A stretch of DNA of 56,587 nt, filler included, from Dugesia japonica (taxonomy: Eukaryota): NCBI GenBank assembly GCA_001938525.1. It is 6 parts of 6 records of this genome, joined end to end, with 100 filler letters (N's around TTAATTAATTAA, not from the genome) between each part and the next. Parts side by side here need not be neighbours in the genome. Positions count along the whole stretch, not along the records: positions 47,525 to 56,587 come from MQRL01320483.1; 5 more parts are not named here. One strand, 5' to 3'. Positions within the stretch are counted from its first letter, which is position 1; the number at the start of each line of letters is the position of its first letter. Both the position numbers and the translations under genes were made by a program. Shown here piece by piece: positions 46,703-56,587 of this stretch. Under the pieces are notes generated by a model. The model saw only the letters and a list, made by a program, of their open reading frames with translations. It did no database searches and had not been told where the DNA came from.

Positions 46703-48079
46703 GTAAATTTTCAATTAAAATTTTATTTATCAAAATTTCTTATGAATAAGATTTTCACAATTACAATAGTTTTAATTAGTTCATTTTTAATTTTTAACGT
46801 CATAACAAGCTATTAAAATTAATCACTAATAAAGTATTTAATATATATATATATATATTTCATATATTGTAAATAAAAACTAAATAAAATTATACAAACA
46901 GTAAATTCTTGTTTGAAGCTTTTAAATAATTTAATATACTCAGTTGAGATTTCAAAAGATCAAACCTTTTCATATAAAATTCGCATGAGAGTAAGAGTAT
47001 CAAGATTAACAGCACTTCTTTATGGATTATACTATAATATCTGATGAGGAGGACTGACTAAGGTATCAGCTAAATTTAATCGGTTTCATGACAAAAGCCC
47101 ACATCATAAAAGACCACATGAAAATAGTTCACACGGTGAAAATCCCACATTGACAAAAGTCCATGTTTTTTTATATATCGGTCATATTTATTATTTTAAT
47201 CTCAATTTTTCTTGTTTTGTGGGGTTGATTACAGTTGTTTTAATTGATTATTTATTGTTGTCGTATATAGATGTTGTTGAGATGTACAAAAATTAATTTT
47301 TTTTCGTACAATGTTTTCTTTTGTTAAATAAATTTTCATATAATAAAATTTCATTTAGACTTGAATAAAAAAATAATAAATTAAATTTATAAGGCAAATA
47401 AAATACGAAAACATTTAAAATAATNNNNNNNNNNNNNNNNNNNNNNNNNNNNNNNNNNNNNNNNNNNNTTAATTAATTAANNNNNNNNNNNNNNNNNNNN
47501 NNNNNNNNNNNNNNNNNNNNNNNNCTTGATTAGATTCGTCATAATGATAATTAATTTCTATGATTTCAATAGAAATGCAAGGATACTTTAACATTTTTTG
47601 TAAATCTTTTTTTATATTTTTTTTATATGAAAAAAACTTAAAATTTAACAATTAAAAAAATTAAATCATTCCATAAAAAAATTAAATAGAAATATTAATG
47701 AAAACTTNGTTTATTGAGTTTAGTTGGAAAGTAGAAATCGAATAAATTATAAAATAAAAATTGAAAGTAAATTTGTTTATTATAATTTTGTTTTTAAATA
47801 AATATTTTTATGTTGAAAGTTAATTTAATTAATTTTAAATAACTCGATTTAGAAAATAATCGACAATAATATTTTCAGACAATTATTATTTACAATATGA
47901 CATCATAAGGATAAAATTTGAATATACAATCTAAATATGACTTCATGTAAAGAATTTGTTTACATTATAAAATAAATAATAACCATATTTTATTGTTTCG
48001 TATCGAAAATTAAATTAATTAAAATATAAACAATAAGCCTTCGTTATCATTTCCAGTTATCCGTAGAAAATTTGAAATA

Positions 48080-48782
48080 ATGAATTTACTAGGAGTTTGG
48101 ACGTTGTAAGCTTTTTAAAGCAGACAATGATGAGATCTAAATTTTATTTTTTAGACAATTGACCAGTCTATTGTATAAGTACACAAATGTAATAGATGTT
48201 TCTCACCACAATGGAAAAATTGATTGGGCAACGGTGAAAAGTTCTGGCCTTAATTTTGCGTTTATCAAGTCTTCACAGGGAGCAAATTATATTGATCCTA
48301 TGTTTGTTTCAAATTGGAATAGTGCGTCAAAAAATCAATTTAATCTTGGCGCTTATCATTTCTACGAACCGAAAGTATCATATAAAAAACAATTTATGAA
48401 TTTTCGTAGTTGCTTATTAAAAGTAAATATAAGTCTTCCAAGCAACGCTATAGCTCTTGACGTGGAAAAGATTGGTAATATATCCAAAGCCCAATATTCC
48501 GACGATATTTATTCATTTCTTGAATTACTAAAATCGAATTTCGAAGTTCCTATTTTCCTTTATACTGGTAACTCATTTTGGAATGGTAACATTGATTGGA
48601 GAAGACATGATTTTACGCAATATTTACTTTGGGTTGCAAGTTATACTAAAAATCCTCAACCAACCATGCCTGGTAATTGGACAACATGGGGTTTGTGGCA
48701 ATATACCGATAAAGGCAAAGTTAATGGAATTAAAGGTTATGTAGATCTTAATTATCTTCCATTCGGAATTCCACAAAATTGA
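48080..48782 (+). CDS. GH25 (Chalaropsis-type) muramidase/lysozyme; exons 48080-48105 and 48155-48782
   Basis: Motifs IDVSHHNGKIDW, FAFIKSSQG, GAYHFY, ALDVE (DxE), LWVASY and WQYTDKGKVNGIKGYVDLN. A 49-nt GTAAG...TTTTTAG intron joins ATG 48080 in frame. AATAAA at 48812. Confidence 0.93.
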
Positions 48783-49477
48783 TAATAATCAATATAAAAT
48801 CTGCAACATTGAATAAACAAAATATTGATAATTATTAAACTTATTGCATACTTTGTTATTTTGATTATAATCACTTATCTCTTAATACTTTAATAGTATT
48901 TATAAATACTCTATTTTACTCATAACATTTACTTAATAAAAACAGATCTAATTTCTTCTGTTTTCTTATTATTTTTTAATTTTCAATAATAGTTTTAGAA
49001 AATTATTTTGGTTTAACATCATTGTGTGTAGGTGGATAGTAGCGCATTGGCTCTTCTCGTGTGTAAAAAATTGAGTTACAAATTTCATGTTTTTAGGCGG
49101 CAATAAAAATGTGTGTGATTGCGAAACTTTTGCACGTATTTTTGTTGTCTGTATAGTTCGATTTATTCGAATTTTTTATTGATTTTAATTTTTGGTATGA
49201 AATTTAAAATTTAAATTTTTAAAAATTAAATTTAGTGCCCATTTTTATTCTTTAATTCTCTTTAAAATTATTTGAATTTTCAATATGAATTTCTGTTTGT
49301 TTCCTTTTTGTGAGTTATTTAAATGTTCTAAGTAAATATTAGAATTTTCCTCAATGAATATTAGAATTTTGTCCTGGTATATATCTAAATTTTTAATCAG
49401 CTGTTCTTAAAATATTTCATTGGTGGATGTTAGTGATTCGTGGATTTTAAATATCTGGGAAATTTTTATATATATTA

Positions 49478-49600
49478 AAGTGGAACCTCTCAAAATTGAT
49501 AATCTAAGAAGCTGCAATATTTCTATTTCTGTATAATGGTGACCACCTCCCAAAAAGGGACCACTTCTTGAGAAAGTTGTCACTTTAGAGAGGTTTCATA
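49478..49600. mobile_element. Short Tigger-like MITE
   Basis: AGTGGAACCTCTCAAAATTGATAA / TTGTCACTTTAGAGAGGTTTCA inverted ends. Confidence 0.55.
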
Positions 49601-49722
49601 TTAAAATTTATTTTTTTTAAAACATTCAAATATTCATGTAAAAAATGTACTTAACAGATTTTTAAAATATAAAATATTTTTTAAAACGAAATTAATTTAA
49701 ATAATTTCTATATATTATATTA

Positions 49723-49865
49723 GGGACCATCCATTATGGATGTTCCCAAAAAAATAGCACTTTTTGACCCTCCCTTGTCCATTTCCAGGACCCTCCCTAT
49801 TGTCCACACGTGTCCCCTTTGTAGAGACTCCCCCTTCCGAGGGGATGTCCTTAATGGATGGTCCT
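49723..49865. mobile_element. PIF/Harbinger (Tourist-like) MITE
   Basis: TTA|GGGACCATCCATTA ... TAATGGATGGTCCT|TTA. Confidence 0.82.
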
Positions 49866-50016
49866 TTAGGCAAAATTATAAAAGTATAATTTATTTTAAA
49901 GAAATTATGCTGAAAAATAATTAAAAATATATGTAAAGTATAAATACTTTGTAGAATTAAAATGGATATTTTTAAAATATTTTATTACAAATTTCTCAGA
50001 TTACTTGTTTGAATAC

Positions 50017-50094
50017 TATGGATTATTCTATGGATTATTCTATGGATTATTCTATGGATTATCCTATGGATTATTCTATGGATTATTCTATGGT
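50017..50094. repeat. 12-bp tandem repeat (TATGGATTATTC), about 6.5 copies
   Basis: Directly visible; produces the MDYS-repeat ORF. Confidence 0.9.
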
Positions 50095-50952
50095 TTTCTC
50101 AGAGAAGGTACTAGCGCACTTGCACATTGCCCCTTATCCTAAGTGGTTTGATTATTTTGAATCAAAACCAGTATCATTGAATAGAGAATTAAAAGGTAAG
50201 TCAGAAATGCATCCGAACATTTTTTCTGAAAATGTATCCTTCCTTATGAAAATCTAGTTTGAAAGTTTAAATTAAAGACTTCAATAATTAATTTCTCAGT
50301 AAAAAATTATCGTATAATGACAAATTTGGTATCATTATTCTTAAAAATAAAAGTTCTTTAATTGCTATAAAGAGTTTTTTATATAAATATGCTTAGTTCT
50401 CTCAGAAAAGGTAGTGGCGTACTGGCACAGTTGAACACTGTGTTATAAAATTTCTCAGCTTCTAGTAATTGTATGACTTTGAAGATTGTACTATTCGATT
50501 CGAAATTAAAAACTCTATATAATTGCTTAATGAACTATTACTGAAAATGTATGCTTCTCGAAGTAACATATTATTATTGATTATATTTTTAATTATAATT
50601 AATTCATATCATTATTTTTACACCATTAAAATCAGAATAAAAAACTGCTTATATATTGCCTAAAATACTTATAGTTACAAATGCTTCCTTCTTACAATTG
50701 AATTGCATATGTTAATTTAAATTGTTTTCATTAAATTTAAAAATCTTATATGTTAATTGAAATAAGTGATTCTTTGAGTAAATTTCAAATTTTAATGGTT
50801 TTTATAATATAAATTTGATTTACTATTACAAATAAGCGTTAAAAATTAATTCTATTTATAATTGTGACGCTATTTTACTAATAAAATAAGCAGGATAAAA
50901 TTTTAAAACATTGAAATAATGCAATTTACATATAAATAATACTAAAAAGATA

Positions 50953-52293
50953 AAGCAGCGTAGCAAAGTGGAGGGGTGTTGTTTAATATGCCTCGGGCGT
51001 TACTCGCAGAGGGGCGGCGAATGGTCCTCAAAACAAATAGGATTTTCTGTGTCAAAATAAATTTAATAGTTTTTTTGGCGAAGCATATGCGACCAATAAA
51101 GTTTGAGAACCACTGTACATTGACATAATCGAATTTTCTAAAAGCATTAATAACTTATTCAACTGTTGGGCTTCTAGAATTTGAGTGTTAGAGCTTACAA
51201 TCGTATATTATTAATCGTGGATATAGTAAAAGATCCTTTCCCAAAACTTGTATTTGTGTAGGCCTTTTGTTATTATAGTCTAAAAGATGACATAGAAGTC
51301 ACAAGATTTGTGCTGACACTTTTCCCGGATTCAGTGGGTCTTTGTAGTAACCCGTCTTATAGCGTTGGGCCATATCACCTTAACGCCATTTACTTACGCT
51401 AATTATCAGAGTGATCCCAAAATTCAATTTAGGCTATACATTTAATTTCTAATCAAAATATGCACATGATACAAACTTGAATTATAAAAAATGTCATCTG
51501 TAAACCCTAAATCTAATCACACAATCACCACTGTCTTGATACTGCCATTCTGCCTTGCATAGTTCAGAATGATTACTTTTGTGGGCTTTGTCTGCGCTTG
51601 AATCCATCGGTTTGCATGATTCTTACATAGAATGCACATATCGGAGACTATAGTGTTCTTCGATTGGCATAGAACTCTACTACATTTGACAATATCCGAC
51701 ACGTACTCCTTAGATTTAATTCCTTCTCTCGTAAAAATCTATTCTTCTCAAGCAATTAATTTTTCTGTTGGCGTAGGGTCATGGTTTCCTTAATCAAGGT
51801 GGTGGATCTCAATTATCACTGCACGGCTTCTTCAACTTAAGTGGTTTCTGATGTTGCACTGGACTTCATTTAGGATTAAATCGACATAAATTAGTCGCTC
51901 AATCTTTACTACATGATTAAAAGAACATTTTTAGAATTAAATTAGACATGTTTTACATAATAAAATTGAAACCGTTTAAATCAAAATGGTGAATTCAACA
52001 ATGACTTTTATAAAAAAAGATTGAAATAAAAAATATCAAATAATGAAATCCAACTTGACTTATTTTTTGAATTCAACTACGTTTTTATTATAGCAAAGGG
52101 TCGCCGAATGGTCCTCAAGTCAAACAAGATTTTCTGAGTCAAAAAGAATTTAATAATTTTTTGGGCGAATGATATGCAACTGAGAAAACTTGGGAACAAC
52201 TGCTATATATTATATTAATATAGATTTTTCAAGTGTTGGGGGCGCCAAAATTGTGCAGTACCCCGGGCTCTAGTTATGTTCGCTACGCTACTG
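50953..52293. mobile_element. Composite non-autonomous hAT element
   Basis: Ends AAGCAGCGTAGCAAA / TTCGCTACGCTACTG. 8-bp TSD AAAAGATA / AAAACATA. Internal ~105-bp direct repeats at 51010-51115 and 52097-52203. Confidence 0.7.
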
Positions 52294-53029
52294 AAAACAT
52301 ATATATAATTTGAATTACAAGATTTATTTCAAATTATATTGTATCTTTGGTTGATCATAATAGTTTAAAATTAAATACAATAATTTACTTTAATTGACTG
52401 ATTCGGTAATAAAATACTACGTGTTATGCAATGTGCAGTATTAATTTGCTTACTATCTCTAGTAGCTTAAATGTGTTCACTTGTTTTACTGTCACACTGG
52501 TAGTAGTGTCACATTGGTTTACTACGTGTGAACTGCAACTAACTATGTGTAAACTGCAGATAACTATGTATACATTGTAACCAGTTATTTGTAAATTGTT
52601 GCAAGCTGTGTAAAAATTGTAATAAGCTATATGCAAATTGTGACCACCAATGTATAAATTGTAGTAAGCAAATTGCAACCATCTAATATACATTAAGATA
52701 TTAGTTTGAAATTTTTTAGGACTAAATTTTAATTGGAAAACATGCTTTTAAAAAATCTCTATAGATTTGCACAAAATACTAAGTCTTTAAGCCCTGATTA
52801 AAATATAAACTAATTTTATTAGGATTTATTAAATTTCCATTATTGCCTTAATTTTAATAAGTTTCAAAAATTTCGTTAATTTTTCTAAAGTCATTTAAAA
52901 TTAATTATTTGCACAAAAGTTAATTTAATTTTATTAATTTCCCCTTAAGCTCCCTGTTAATTTCTGTAAAGTTTATCGAATATAATAGGTTTAATAGATT
53001 TATAGTGCTCATTAGGTGTTATTTGTTGT

Positions 53030-55480
53030 ATTTCTTTCATAGACTTCGACATTCCCGAGCTGATATTCGGCAAAAATGATTCAAAATCGAAAATAGTTTC
53101 TTATCAAAATGTCGAAGAAATAAAACATGTGACGGGGAAGGAGAAGTACTGTGCCAGGGTGCTAGTATACATCTACTAACATCTAATTGTAAATACATTT
53201 GTAGTAGCCTCCAGTGAACTGCACAATTATGTTTTGAGTAATGTGTTAGAAAGATTTTCTTAATTTTACTACCTGGATTACTTTGATGTTCTGATGTTAC
53301 TGGTATATCGTTTAAATAATCATGGTGCTCATTAGAAATTTCTGTCTACTTCTACTTTAACAATGGATGGCTTCAACCCACTCTTCTACTAGTGGAGCCC
53401 TGCCTTTTGGGTACTGCCTTTCAGAATCACTTTCATATACTTCATCCTATCCATCGTTTGTATTGAAATTTTCATCTTCAATCGCATGTACTCGATTATA
53501 TCAGTTTCTGCAGTCATAAAGTTCTCACTTTTTCTTTTCATTTTCAAATGTCCACCATTTCTACAACAAAAGCATTTTGTTGAGTTTTTAATTAGAAAAT
53601 CTCGACTTATATGTCTTGTTTTATGATAAGTCCAACACTCTACCACTTTTTTATAGGACAATTTGCTTTAGTGTGACTGGTCTTATGACAACCAACATTC
53701 GATAATTCATTTTTCCTTTATTTGATCCACATGTCTATTCACTGTATGATATACAGGTTTCTGATAATTTCGACTTGTAACTCTCGCGTAACTTCTAAAT
53801 GCATAAACTTGATCTCTGGTTTTCTCTACTCGATCTATTAACATTATTGTTTCTTCAATTTCTTCTATATTATGTCGTTTCTCCACAGTCACTTTTTTCT
53901 TAAACTTTTTGTTATCTAAACATTGTTATCTTTTACATTTTTTAAATAAATTTGAATCTCTTCATTTCCACGACTGTAGTTAATCCAATTTGAAAGTCTT
54001 TAATAACATCTTTCTTTTTTTAAATTCCATACGTAAACAAGCCTGAAAACCTTCAACTTTTTTCAACGTCTTTACATATTCTTCCAACAAATCATCATCT
54101 AACAAACAAGAGACTAATNNNNNNNNNNNNNNNNNNNNNNTGATGTTTTTAGCTTCAAAATACAATTCGCACCGCTTTATGAATTTCTCAATATCATCTC
54201 TTCTAGAGAACACATTCGGCAATAACCTCTATGTAATAGAATCGGTATTAATCAGGTTAGGTAAATCTTCAAATGGATAATTCATTTTCCAAGTCAAAAC
54301 TAATATTTTTAGACATAATTTGTTTCACAATTAAAACATCAATTAGTTGAGATAAGTGATTACAATTAATTAAATATTAATATTCAATTTAATCGCTTTG
54401 TATTGGCTAAAATTATTAATAATTTATTATTTCCTTATACAGATACTGACAGAAATTTGAATAATATTGAATTGCAACTGAAAAATGAAAGAAAAGAATC
54501 GAAAATTATGGCACTAATAGAAATATTATGTGATATTATAGATTTATTCAGTAAATATAAAATGGATATTTGGAGAACAAATTCCATTCAATATGCTACA
54601 GAAACAAAGAATGATGTTCCTATGGCAATTAAACCCCGAAGAATATCAAAGAGCTTACGAAATGATGTTGGAAAAATGATAAATGAGCTTTTGAAACTTA
54701 ATATTTTTAGAGAAAGTACGTGATTTGTCACTTGTGATTGTCAGAAAAAGAAATAGAGATTTACAAATGTGCGTTGACTAGGTCTTTAAATGTGAAAACA
54801 TCTCGATCAATTTTTCCCATCTGCAGATGAATTATTTTATACCGTTTCCGATACCATGTATTTCACGAGTCTAGATTTGCTAAGTCGTCATTACCAAGTT
54901 CCAATAAATGAAGATATTCAGAAAACTGCTTTCAGCACAAGATATGATCAATTTGAGTTCAACAGAATACCTTTCCGATTGTGCTGGACACCTGTTGGGG
55001 TTTTATTTAGGCAGCACTACTTTAAATTCAAGTCTAGGGTAATATATTTAGTAAAACCACCCGAAGAATTTGGTCGAGTGTCCGGGTTCTAGGATTTTGG
55101 CTGATGACTTGGAACCCGTAATTCGAGAGCATGCTCGTATTCGTTTGTTTCGGGTCCATAGCTACCAAGTTTGTAACATGAGCAATGATTAATAAACGAG
55201 TAAGTGTAGTCTTGCTTATAACTAACACTACAAATTATTATAAAGAAATAAAATTTATACAATAAGAATTAAAAGGTTTGTTAAGGTTTATTTACAGTAC
55301 TGAATACATTAGATAAAACAACACCATTCCATCATACCGTTACATTATACAGTAGCATACACAGACATTCGTGGAGCATTATACGTCAACTATCTACACT
55401 ATCTACTACCATCTTGTGACTAATATGTGGGGCCTTTACACACGCAAGCCGTCTTCTGGTGAAATCCATCACCAGCCTTG
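53030..55480. mobile_element. Gypsy relics: gag with zinc knuckles (minus, 53390-54290), RT (plus, 54500-55000), LTR/PBS junction (minus, ~55160-55180)
   Basis: CWTYHKTRHISRD and CFCCRNGGHLK knuckles. YFTSLDLLSRHYQVPINE and KTAFSTRYDQFEFNRIPF. Reverse complement TGTTACA-AACTTGGTAGC. Confidence 0.78.
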
Positions 55481-55909
55481 CCCAGTAGTATCGAGTAGTC
55501 ACCTGAAAACATATGAGCTCATTAAGTATCGGCAGTAATACAACCACCACTTAGCAACAAGTGTTTAAAGTTACCGGCCTCAATTTCCACTGGGCTGCCA
55601 TTTTTTTCAATCTTATTTTATTCTGTTATAATAGAGTTCAAAAATGGTGAATTTGGAAAAATTTAAATATTTTAATTTGAACAGAATCTAAAAAAATTAT
55701 TTGTAATAAATTTTNNNNNNNNNNNNNNNNNNNNNNNNNNNNNNNNNNNNNNNNNNNNNNNNNNNNAAAATTCAATAAACATTCATTCATCAATCACTAA
55801 TAGTTATACAAAAATTAGAAAAGGCTAAGAAAAAATTCAAAAATTTTATTTCACAAATCAGCTTAAATACACATCTTTCTGGATAAATATGACATAATAT
55901 ATCTAGTTA

Positions 55910-56395
55910 TCAGACAACCGATTTAGTGTGAGTATTAATAAATAAACCTAAATTGAAGAAAAGATCATTCCAACTTTTGAAATGATTTTTTCTTTTTTTG
56001 ATCCAAGTACATAAACCATTATGATAAATCGGATTTGATCCGTCAAATCTAGAATCAATCATTATCATAGCTCCCCAATCCTCGCGATGCCTAATACAAC
56101 GGCCAATAGCTTGATTGAGAGCTCTAAATGCTTGAATATTATACCATTCAATTCCAGTTAAACATTGATTATCTGTGTTTTTATGCTGTTGGTTTTTCTT
56201 TGTATTGTAGTTCATTTTTAGTGATACCTTGAACACGGAATAGAATCAGTACACTGGTTCATAATAGAACAAACTTTAGGATCAGTCACTGATGGATATG
56301 GTATTCCTACTGTTACAACAAGACGAGCGGCGTCATCGGCAAAGTCAACTCCTTCACTGGCTTTACCCCGGAAAACAGCAAGTAACAAGGCGCCA
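55910..56395 (-). CDS. BRIP1: FANCJ/BRIP1-type XPD-family helicase, last two exons (>56395-56275, 56227-55910)
   Basis: [34 protein letters not shown] and [34 protein letters not shown]. The RALNQA/DWGA signature favours FANCJ over RTEL1. 47-nt intron at 56274-56228. Confidence 0.85.
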
Positions 56396-56587
56396 NNNNN
56401 NNNNNNNNNNNNNNNNNNNNNNNNNNNNNNNNNNNNNNNNNNNNNNNNNCGCGGTTCCATAAAAATTGATTTGTGTTTTCTGATTTCATCAATTAACCGC
56501 GTATCCTTAATAGAGAATGAATGATGGGCTTAATTGTTTAAGAAATAATTCATAGTAATAAATTATTTATGTGAAACCAATTTTCCA

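Follow-up and report, generated by a model that had tools for sequence, protein, structure and literature searches.

A spliced and expressed GH25 muramidase gene in the Dugesia japonica genome, probably an old acquisition from bacteria

A gene for a muramidase of glycoside hydrolase family 25 (GH25) is present in a stretch of DNA from Dugesia japonica (assembly GCA_001938525.1), and is most simply seen as a functional nuclear gene of an animal-type host that arose by an old, since domesticated, horizontal acquisition from bacteria. The probability that we attach to this reading is about 0.8. The whole stretch, here called the window, has 56,587 nts, filler included. The piece of it that was analysed, positions 47525–56587, comes from MQRL01320483.1 and has a GC content of 28.8%, with non-coding stretches as low as 15–25%. 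The gene occupies 48080–48782 on the + strand, its two exons (48080–48105 and 48155–48782; Table 1) specifying a product of 217 amino acids.

A preliminary description of the window had argued that the TTG at 48159, with which the long open reading frame (ORF) begins, is not the true start, and that a short exon beginning at ATG 48080 is joined to it in frame through removal of a 49-nt GT-AG intron. RNA bears out both points. A search of sequencing runs with a 1301-nt query found the stretch in 20 runs from 11 studies, all of one species, the RNA-type runs covering ~57% of the query, which is ~740 nts and roughly the span 48080–48820. Two raw RNA runs of 2026 (X21 and X22), one RNA contig set (X8) and one DNA contig set (X2) were placed on 47525–50524. 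Reads over the 48105/48155 junction, which the description had proposed to look for, number 342 in X21 and 190 in X22 (532 together). One X8 contig has the same joint, with 49 nts between GT and AG skipped, and unaligned read ends at 48155 match the end of exon 1. The intron donor is GTAAGC at 48106, and TTTTTTAG terminates at 48154. After splicing, the coding sequence is 654 nts (217 amino acids) and its product starts MNLLGVWTLQLTSLLYKYTNVIDVSHH. From the RNA 5′ ends to 48080 no other ATG occurs, and the ATG at 48080–48082 has an A at −3. In X22, an oligo-dT stranded library, 99% of the stranded reads correspond to + strand RNA. RNA depth is 200–370 over 48125–48724 and about zero in both flanks, so transcription is confined to the gene. 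Oligo-dT and cDNA libraries give ~100–140 reads per million for a transcript shorter than 1 kb, which marks strong expression. A minor joint, 48102 to 48155 (52 nts skipped, with ATT between the two sides in nine reads), occurs in 10 reads of X21 and one of X22, and probably reflects the way in which reads with a variant beside the donor site are aligned, not a second donor.

GH25 genes are typical of prophages and endosymbionts, and the bacterial group closest to the present gene includes ‘Candidatus Tisiphia’ and a 1.46-Mb chromosome with relaxase and transposase genes. This would suit a contaminant, or a recent and unexpressed insert of bacterial or phage DNA, whether real but dead in the nuclear genome or produced by the assembly. 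However, hundreds of poly(A)-selected reads come from RNA spliced at a spliceosomal intron, the gene is flanked by non-coding DNA of 15–25% GC without bacterial genes, the stretch is seen in 11 studies, and the ORF is intact with a pN/pS (ratio of non-synonymous to synonymous differences, each per site) of 0.34. The coverage check that had been proposed against contamination gave a concordant answer. In X2, which comes from a study other than that of the run holding the stretch best, four overlapping unitigs (47525–48209, 48202–48402, 48378–48515 and 48493–49442) have a depth of 12–16, equal in gene, intron and AT-rich flanks, as expected of single-copy host DNA, and the intron is present unspliced in the first of them. 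Repeats at roughly 1000-fold that depth lie 0.8 kb downstream of the gene; these segments (49525–50424) are dispersed repeats, resembling miniature inverted-repeat transposable elements (MITEs), that occur in very high numbers in the same genome. About 7 kb downstream of the lysozyme gene and on the opposite strand, two exons match consecutive positions of the PF13307 profile. Their sole PDB match is human FANCJ (9ej9, E 3.2e-21), and a search of the ESM Atlas with a helicase exon returned the helicase family only. Because of the single-copy depth over gene, intron and flanks, the adjacent host repeats and the FANCJ-type exons, contamination is excluded and the gene is physically integrated in eukaryotic host DNA. 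The contaminant or dead-insert explanation is already refuted by the RNA and DNA run data, and its residual probability is negligible.

The predicted protein is a GH25 enzyme throughout. The preliminary description had pointed to an uninterrupted domain with the motifs DVSHH, LDVE and VDLN, and all three are present: IDVSHH has its Asp at 48195–48197, LDVE is at 48459–48467 and VDLN at 48744–48746. The 207-residue ORF from the TTG (48159–48782) matches Pfam PF01183 over the full profile (1–180 of 180; E 3.2e-41; 142 bits, the cut-off being 27), well outside what chance would give, and aligns with cellosyl (PDB 1jfx) at E 7.3e-22 with the IDVSH, LDxE and VDxN motifs in register. The catalytic acidic residues of cellosyl are D9, D98 and E100, and those of Cpl-1 are D10, D92, E94 and D182. 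In ORF numbering D13, D101, E103 and D196 align with the cellosyl motifs. D13, E103 and D196 are invariant in an alignment of 11 sequences, and D101 nearly so, the lone exception being a Phe in the relative P0001. An AlphaFold2 model built on that alignment has a mean pLDDT (predicted local distance difference test) of 92 and a predicted template-modelling (TM) score of 0.89. In a Foldseek comparison of the model with PDB the top 22 matches are all GH25 enzymes, with TM scores up to 0.85. The best neighbours of the modelled fold are the phiSM101 endolysin domain, Bacillus anthracis GH25 and cellosyl (0.80–0.85), and fungal GH25 structures score 0.77–0.79 at 24–25% identity (E 1e-14 to 1e-9). 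Judged from these residues and the predicted fold, the product most likely cleaves the β-1,4 bond between MurNAc and GlcNAc in peptidoglycan.

The first 16–19 residues precede the first barrel strand. This moderately hydrophobic segment, of which exon 1 encodes the beginning, is conserved in all four members of the clade described below and is absent from several bacterial relatives. A short signal peptide, half of it supplied by the new exon, would be its simplest reading. The predicted mature protein of ~22.8 kDa would have an isoelectric point of 9.0, like many lysozymes, and secretion with an antibacterial or digestive role is plausible.

The gene is both intact and under selection. Between 48053 and 48767, ~25 fixed sites in 700 nts differ between the 2026 RNA runs and the reference, with mapping lost at the 3′ end and in the untranslated region (UTR), and older RNA and DNA runs agree with the reference sequence. 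Two well-diverged lineages therefore share one species name. Within the coding region the X21/X22 lineage has eight synonymous and 11 non-synonymous fixed differences from the reference (~3.5% of coding sites), with no stop or indel, and it is between these two host lineages that the pN/pS quoted above was obtained. A proposed search for orthologues and paralogues, with dN/dS (non-synonymous to synonymous substitution rates), yielded three close relatives. Against two of them, on contigs L001 and L004, dN is ~0.4 and dS is saturated, giving a dN/dS of at most ~0.22. The gene is under purifying selection.

Searches of 5.8 billion protein clusters and of 1.84 billion cluster representatives found as close relatives only P0001, P0021 and P0022, at 51–53% identity; in both databases the next tier is at 38–43%. 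This scarcity may reflect a patchy distribution or the uneven representation of eukaryotic proteomes in the databases searched. JGI metagenome contigs scanned with clade-specific motifs gave no relative, and no record matched the 207-residue ORF exactly. Exon 1 is conserved in L001, L004 and P0022. The introns of L001 and L004 lie at the same codon and phase as that of the window gene, and the annotated N-terminus of P0022 agrees with the spliced form; the 5′ exon and intron are thus older than the split of these genes. With a GC content of 33–34%, L001 and L004 probably come from other species. With identity within the clade at only ~52%, synonymous sites saturated and an intron in common, the transfer is old and not recent. 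In P0001 (L001:378-1066) a Phe replaces the first Asp of Asp-x-Glu and a Gly the C-terminal catalytic Asp, with the intron and remaining sequence conserved. This member, whether paralogue or orthologue, may have lost its catalytic activity.

For the wider affinities of the family, an alignment of five sequences was used to scan bacterial and archaeal genomes, each species being represented once, and 80 named loci were kept. The best of them were in a Spirochaetia metagenome-assembled genome (41%), Roseibium, Pannonibacter, Terriglobales and the ‘Candidatus Tisiphia’ endosymbiont of a fly. The highest bacterial identity, 41–43%, compares with 24–25% to the fungal GH25 structures. Unrooted maximum-likelihood trees were made with 99 sequences and with 50 rows, leaving out nematode and amoeba LYS, leafhopper, ant and Meloidogyne sequences. 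In the 99-sequence tree a clade made up of the four intron-bearing genes (100/98) lies within a 17-row group (100/85). This group also has the Tisiphia and Spirochaetia genes, P0052 (from a cluster with Pseudomonas lundensis proteins) and the ‘Lysozyme M1’ of the springtail Folsomia candida; its next neighbours are Stappiaceae alphaproteobacteria (91/91). The 50-row tree has the same nesting among bacteria (96/89, then 95/91). The horizontal acquisition from bacteria put forward in the preliminary description is supported by this nesting, which argues for a bacterial ancestry of the gene. As the trees leave the sister of the four-member clade unsettled, the donor is stated only as a member of a mostly proteobacterial subclade. 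An origin from phage was considered and set aside, since the best GenBank phage endolysins have at most 39.5% identity and are no closer than bacterial genes.

P0062 (L086:5001-5846, OZ181652.1), a member of the 17-row group, is on the 1.46-Mb bacterial chromosome and adjoins the relaxase and transposase genes mentioned above. The Tisiphia gene (L010), in the closest bacterial GH25 subclade, belongs to a Rickettsiaceae endosymbiont of an insect. Such an endosymbiont, together with the P0062 chromosome, offers a plausible route into animal germ lines. P0024 has AntA-domain and S24-peptidase genes nearby on its bacterial contig of 485 kb.

A vertically inherited eukaryotic GH25 gene, for instance of the protist or nematode LYS type, that most animals have lost would account for the data with no bacterial transfer. 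At least four members share the old intron and dS is saturated, so the gene has long been eukaryotic, and the tree, besides being unrooted, was built without LYS-type sequences. However, the nearest sequences outside the clade are bacterial, and their identity of 41–43% is not far below that within the clade (51–53%), whereas fungal GH25 structures are far more distant (E 1e-14 to 1e-9, against 7e-22 for cellosyl). The two very large protein collections (5.8 billion clusters and 1.84 billion representatives) yielded only three relatives, and the clade falls inside the bacterial group. Vertical descent is therefore unlikely.

A single transfer into an arthropod ancestor might, alternatively, have given rise to both the window family and the Folsomia gene. 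P0067, the Folsomia protein, is in the same clade of 17–20 rows, both genes place an uninterrupted GH25 domain after a 5′ exon of signal type, and the approximately unbiased (AU) test does not reject joining them (p 0.43). But the Folsomia intron is ~19 codons 5′ of IDVSH and 445 nts long, while that of the window gene is 12 codons away and 49 nts. The two proteins begin with unrelated peptides, a Cys-rich tail is an addition seen in Folsomia, and a direct sister relationship has no support. The AU test is weak on ~200 columns, and equally fails to reject a union with P0312 (p 0.31). A common transfer of this kind is very unlikely. With neither Folsomia nor L087, the contig of P0312, separated from the window family by tests of such little power, the subclade may represent one or several independent transfers. 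L087 itself (L087:371-964, a Logan contig of SRR19355472) has a GH25 ORF with a GC content of 0.60 and a GC at third codon positions (GC3) of 0.88 between AT-rich non-coding flanks. A pyrimidine tract and CAG ending at 361, resembling a splice acceptor, are just 5′ of the ORF, and AATAAA follows the stop. P0312 groups with the ‘Ca. Tisiphia’ endosymbiont GH25 (94/93) at 50% identity. It gives the impression of an independent and recent transfer to another eukaryote.

Several points weigh against an old bacterial acquisition that now serves the host as a secreted enzyme. The tree is unrooted and the bacterial nesting depends on the taxa sampled, hundreds of bacterial against four eukaryotic sequences, with the nematode and amoeba LYS-type GH25 proteins outside the tree. 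The N-terminal segment is only moderately hydrophobic, its mean Kyte-Doolittle value over 18 residues being 0.66, at the lower end of the 0.66–1.67 among the four members. Codon use, which the preliminary description had called AT-rich like that of the host, does match it (GC3 0.249 in the lysozyme gene and 0.252 in the neighbouring FANCJ-like exons), but some candidate donors are equally AT-rich (GC3 0.19–0.25), and codon use does not discriminate. As these include the two most similar bacterial genes, codon composition is weak evidence, and a shift to host usage is not shown. Finally, high-copy repeats and FANCJ/BRIP1-type exons are indeed on the same segment, as the description had noted of eukaryotic MITEs and BRIP1, but the linkage of the lysozyme gene to the latter crosses short runs of N and is given by the assembly only.

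The favoured history, an old bacterial acquisition, would have run as follows. A GH25 N-acetylmuramidase gene of a Pseudomonadota-like bacterium, possibly an endosymbiont or one carrying a prophage, would have been transferred long ago. After integration it would have gained a host core promoter, a short 5′ exon providing the start codon and the beginning of the hydrophobic N-terminal segment, and the 49-nt phase-2 intron; its codon composition may have started close to, or come to be, what is now indistinguishable from the host's. The abundant polyadenylated mRNA would yield the 217-residue product, its GH25 barrel complete and its Asp / Asp-x-Glu / Asp set retained. With its N-terminal segment acting as a short signal peptide, a basic enzyme of ~23 kDa (isoelectric point ~9) could then act extracellularly or in a digestive or phagosomal compartment, where it would kill or digest bacteria.

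At the 5′ end of the gene, the TATAAA at 48025–48030 and the CAGT at 48054–48057 are a candidate core promoter. At its 3′ end, the AATAAA that had been reported after the stop is present at 48812–48817, 30 nts 3′ of the TGA, but its use as a poly(A) signal is not demonstrated; it does not fix the poly(A) site, since the X8 RNA contig continues to 49016. On the piece 47525–56587 no Rfam match was found. Short broken ORFs on both strands lie within 53389–55092, with a peptide resembling a Cys-His knuckle at 53389–53661 (− strand) and one resembling the core of a Ty3/gypsy reverse transcriptase at 54856–55092 (+ strand), both read by eye and the latter unconfirmed. These retroelement-like ORFs (53.4–55.1 kb) have no Pfam match at E 0.01 or better.

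Table 1. Positions of the lysozyme gene and its neighbours in the window, with the corresponding ends of the three closest relatives
Feature	Position or source	Strand	Remarks
TATAAA box-like hexamer (putative)	48025–48030	+	~25–45 nts 5′ of observed RNA 5′ ends; read from sequence
CAGT initiator-like motif (putative)	48054–48057	+	Read from sequence
5′ UTR	48053–48079	+	RNA read starts ~48053–48074, with clusters at 48066, 48070 and 48074
Exon 1, coding part	48080–48105	+	Starts at ATG; 8 codons + 2 nts; MNLLGVWT, next L split by the intron
Spliceosomal intron	48106–48154	+	GT-AG, phase 2, 24% GC, 49 nts; RNA joint reads; unspliced in DNA run X2
Exon 2, coding part including TGA stop	48155–48782	+	In frame with the TTG-ORF 48159–48782 (207 residues)
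GH25 catalytic domain, uninterrupted	48192–48731	+	ORF residues 12–191; Pfam, cellosyl alignment, invariant columns, AlphaFold2 and Foldseek
Catalytic codons (by alignment)	Asp 48195–48197; Asp 48459–48461; Glu 48465–48467; Asp 48744–48746		Last one just outside the Pfam envelope
3′ UTR, at least to 49016	48783–49016	+	X8 RNA contig, record 48493–49016
High-copy host repeats (MITE or other transposable element pieces)	49525–50424		X2 depth 326 to 15312, against ~13 for single-copy DNA
12-nt tandem array, 6.5 copies	50016–50093		Tandem-repeat scan
Last coding exon of FANCJ/BRIP1-type helicase gene (Helicase_C_2)	55913–56197	−	PF13307 E 1.3e-16; exact 5′ exon border not set
Preceding exon of the same helicase gene	56275–56394	−	PF13307 E 1.6e-13, profile positions 63–102; upstream side cut by a run of N
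P0001	1.1-kb metagenome contig L001		GT-AG intron of 50 nts after codon 8, phase 2; spliced N-terminus MNLLVLLTLQ...
P0021	1-kb SRA contig L004		GT-AG intron of 48 nts after codon 8, phase 2; spliced N-terminus MNLIWLWTIQ...
P0022	UniParc entry		N-terminus as annotated, MNLVGIWTMQ..., corresponds to splicing

Among horizontal transfers that give an immediately useful antibacterial function, the adoption of bacterial lysozyme genes by animals is one of the clearest. The present case is unusually clean in that the splice junction, strand, expression, single-copy depth, purifying selection and bacterial nesting are all backed by data. It is also old enough to have given rise to a small family in which the newly built 5′ exon is conserved. 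This makes it a good model for how a prokaryotic ORF can come to have a promoter, an exon with the start codon and, probably, a signal for secretion. It points, too, to a GH25 subclade that is common to arthropod endosymbionts and has seemingly entered animal genomes repeatedly. A broader proposal, offered tentatively and on balance doubtful, is that the four intron-sharing sequences would represent an undescribed phylum- or class-wide family of domesticated muramidases in aquatic or soil invertebrates with AT-rich genomes and ~50-nt introns, for which no GH25 lysozyme has been reported. The family might then be the major secreted digestive or antibacterial lysozyme of these animals, replacing the c-, g- or i-type, and the GH25 subclade with the window family, Folsomia and the L087 contig might reflect a recurrent donor pool of Rickettsiales-like symbionts to animals.

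The phenomenon of bacterial GH25 genes in animals is already established, so nothing is overturned here; a new, apparently old, intron-bearing lineage is added to the known animal cases, and it appears undescribed. The searches made found no relevant literature on GH25 in Hydra, mites, rotifers, Schmidtea or flatworms, and no paper describing the four-member intron-sharing clade, though a listing of it within some genome paper is possible. The ‘lysozymes’ of gall midges, Dermatophagoides and Bradysia (PMC8455502) were dismissed as relatives: their tree has GH24-labelled fungal proteins and APSE-type lysozymes, which are another family.

Among known enzymes, cellosyl of Streptomyces coelicolor (1jfx) and the catalytic domain of the phage phiSM101 endolysin (4kru) resemble the modelled protein with a TM score of 0.85 and a root-mean-square deviation of 2.2–2.3 over 200–205 residues, and their catalytic Asp, Asp-x-Glu and Asp align with its own. 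However, identity is 27–32%, and the bacterial and phage enzymes have neither intron nor eukaryotic 5′ exon. Phage enzymes usually have a separate cell-wall-binding domain as well, and this is absent from the window protein. The mode of working proposed here is that of TvGH25 of Trichomonas vaginalis, which is reported to be a secreted GH25 lysozyme used by a eukaryote against bacteria (bioRxiv 10.64898/2026.07.07.735988), though TvGH25 is a protist gene.

Transfers of bacterial GH25 genes are known for the pea aphid (bLys), Selaginella, Aspergillus and other fungi, and the archaeon Aciduliprofundum (Metcalf et al. 2014, eLife, PMC4241558). As in aphid bLys, the bacterial domain is intact and expressed by the recipient, the aphid introns also being outside the domain. 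But bLys is a carboxypeptidase fusion with five introns (PMC4241558), which rules out identity with it. The window gene encodes a stand-alone enzyme of 217 residues and has one tiny intron; its clade is a separate one, in which a 5′ exon of its own is conserved. The gh25-1 and gh25-2 of the leafhopper Macrosteles are reported to be Pseudomonas-like (PMC6294904), and a Pseudomonas GH25 falls in the same subclade as the window gene. A ‘GH25 Lys1-like’ gene of bacterial origin is known from root-knot nematodes (PMC7593179, PMC3511272). Folsomia candida ‘Lysozyme M1’ (L085:2001-4546, LNIX01000019.1; P0067/P0308; NCBI annotation), of the same GH25 subclade, has a signal-peptide exon that the 445-nt intron separates from an uninterrupted GH25 exon, and a C-terminal domain rich in Cys. 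It shares with the window gene the plan of a signal exon and intact domain, and differs in intron position, N-terminal peptide and C-terminal tail. The GH25 lysozymes of two ant clades came from Wolbachia and, like the window gene, gained a 5′ exon; in the ants, however, that exon is non-coding and the genes are still ~75% identical to bacterial references (PMC13320244), whereas the 5′ exon of the window gene encodes the start of its protein.

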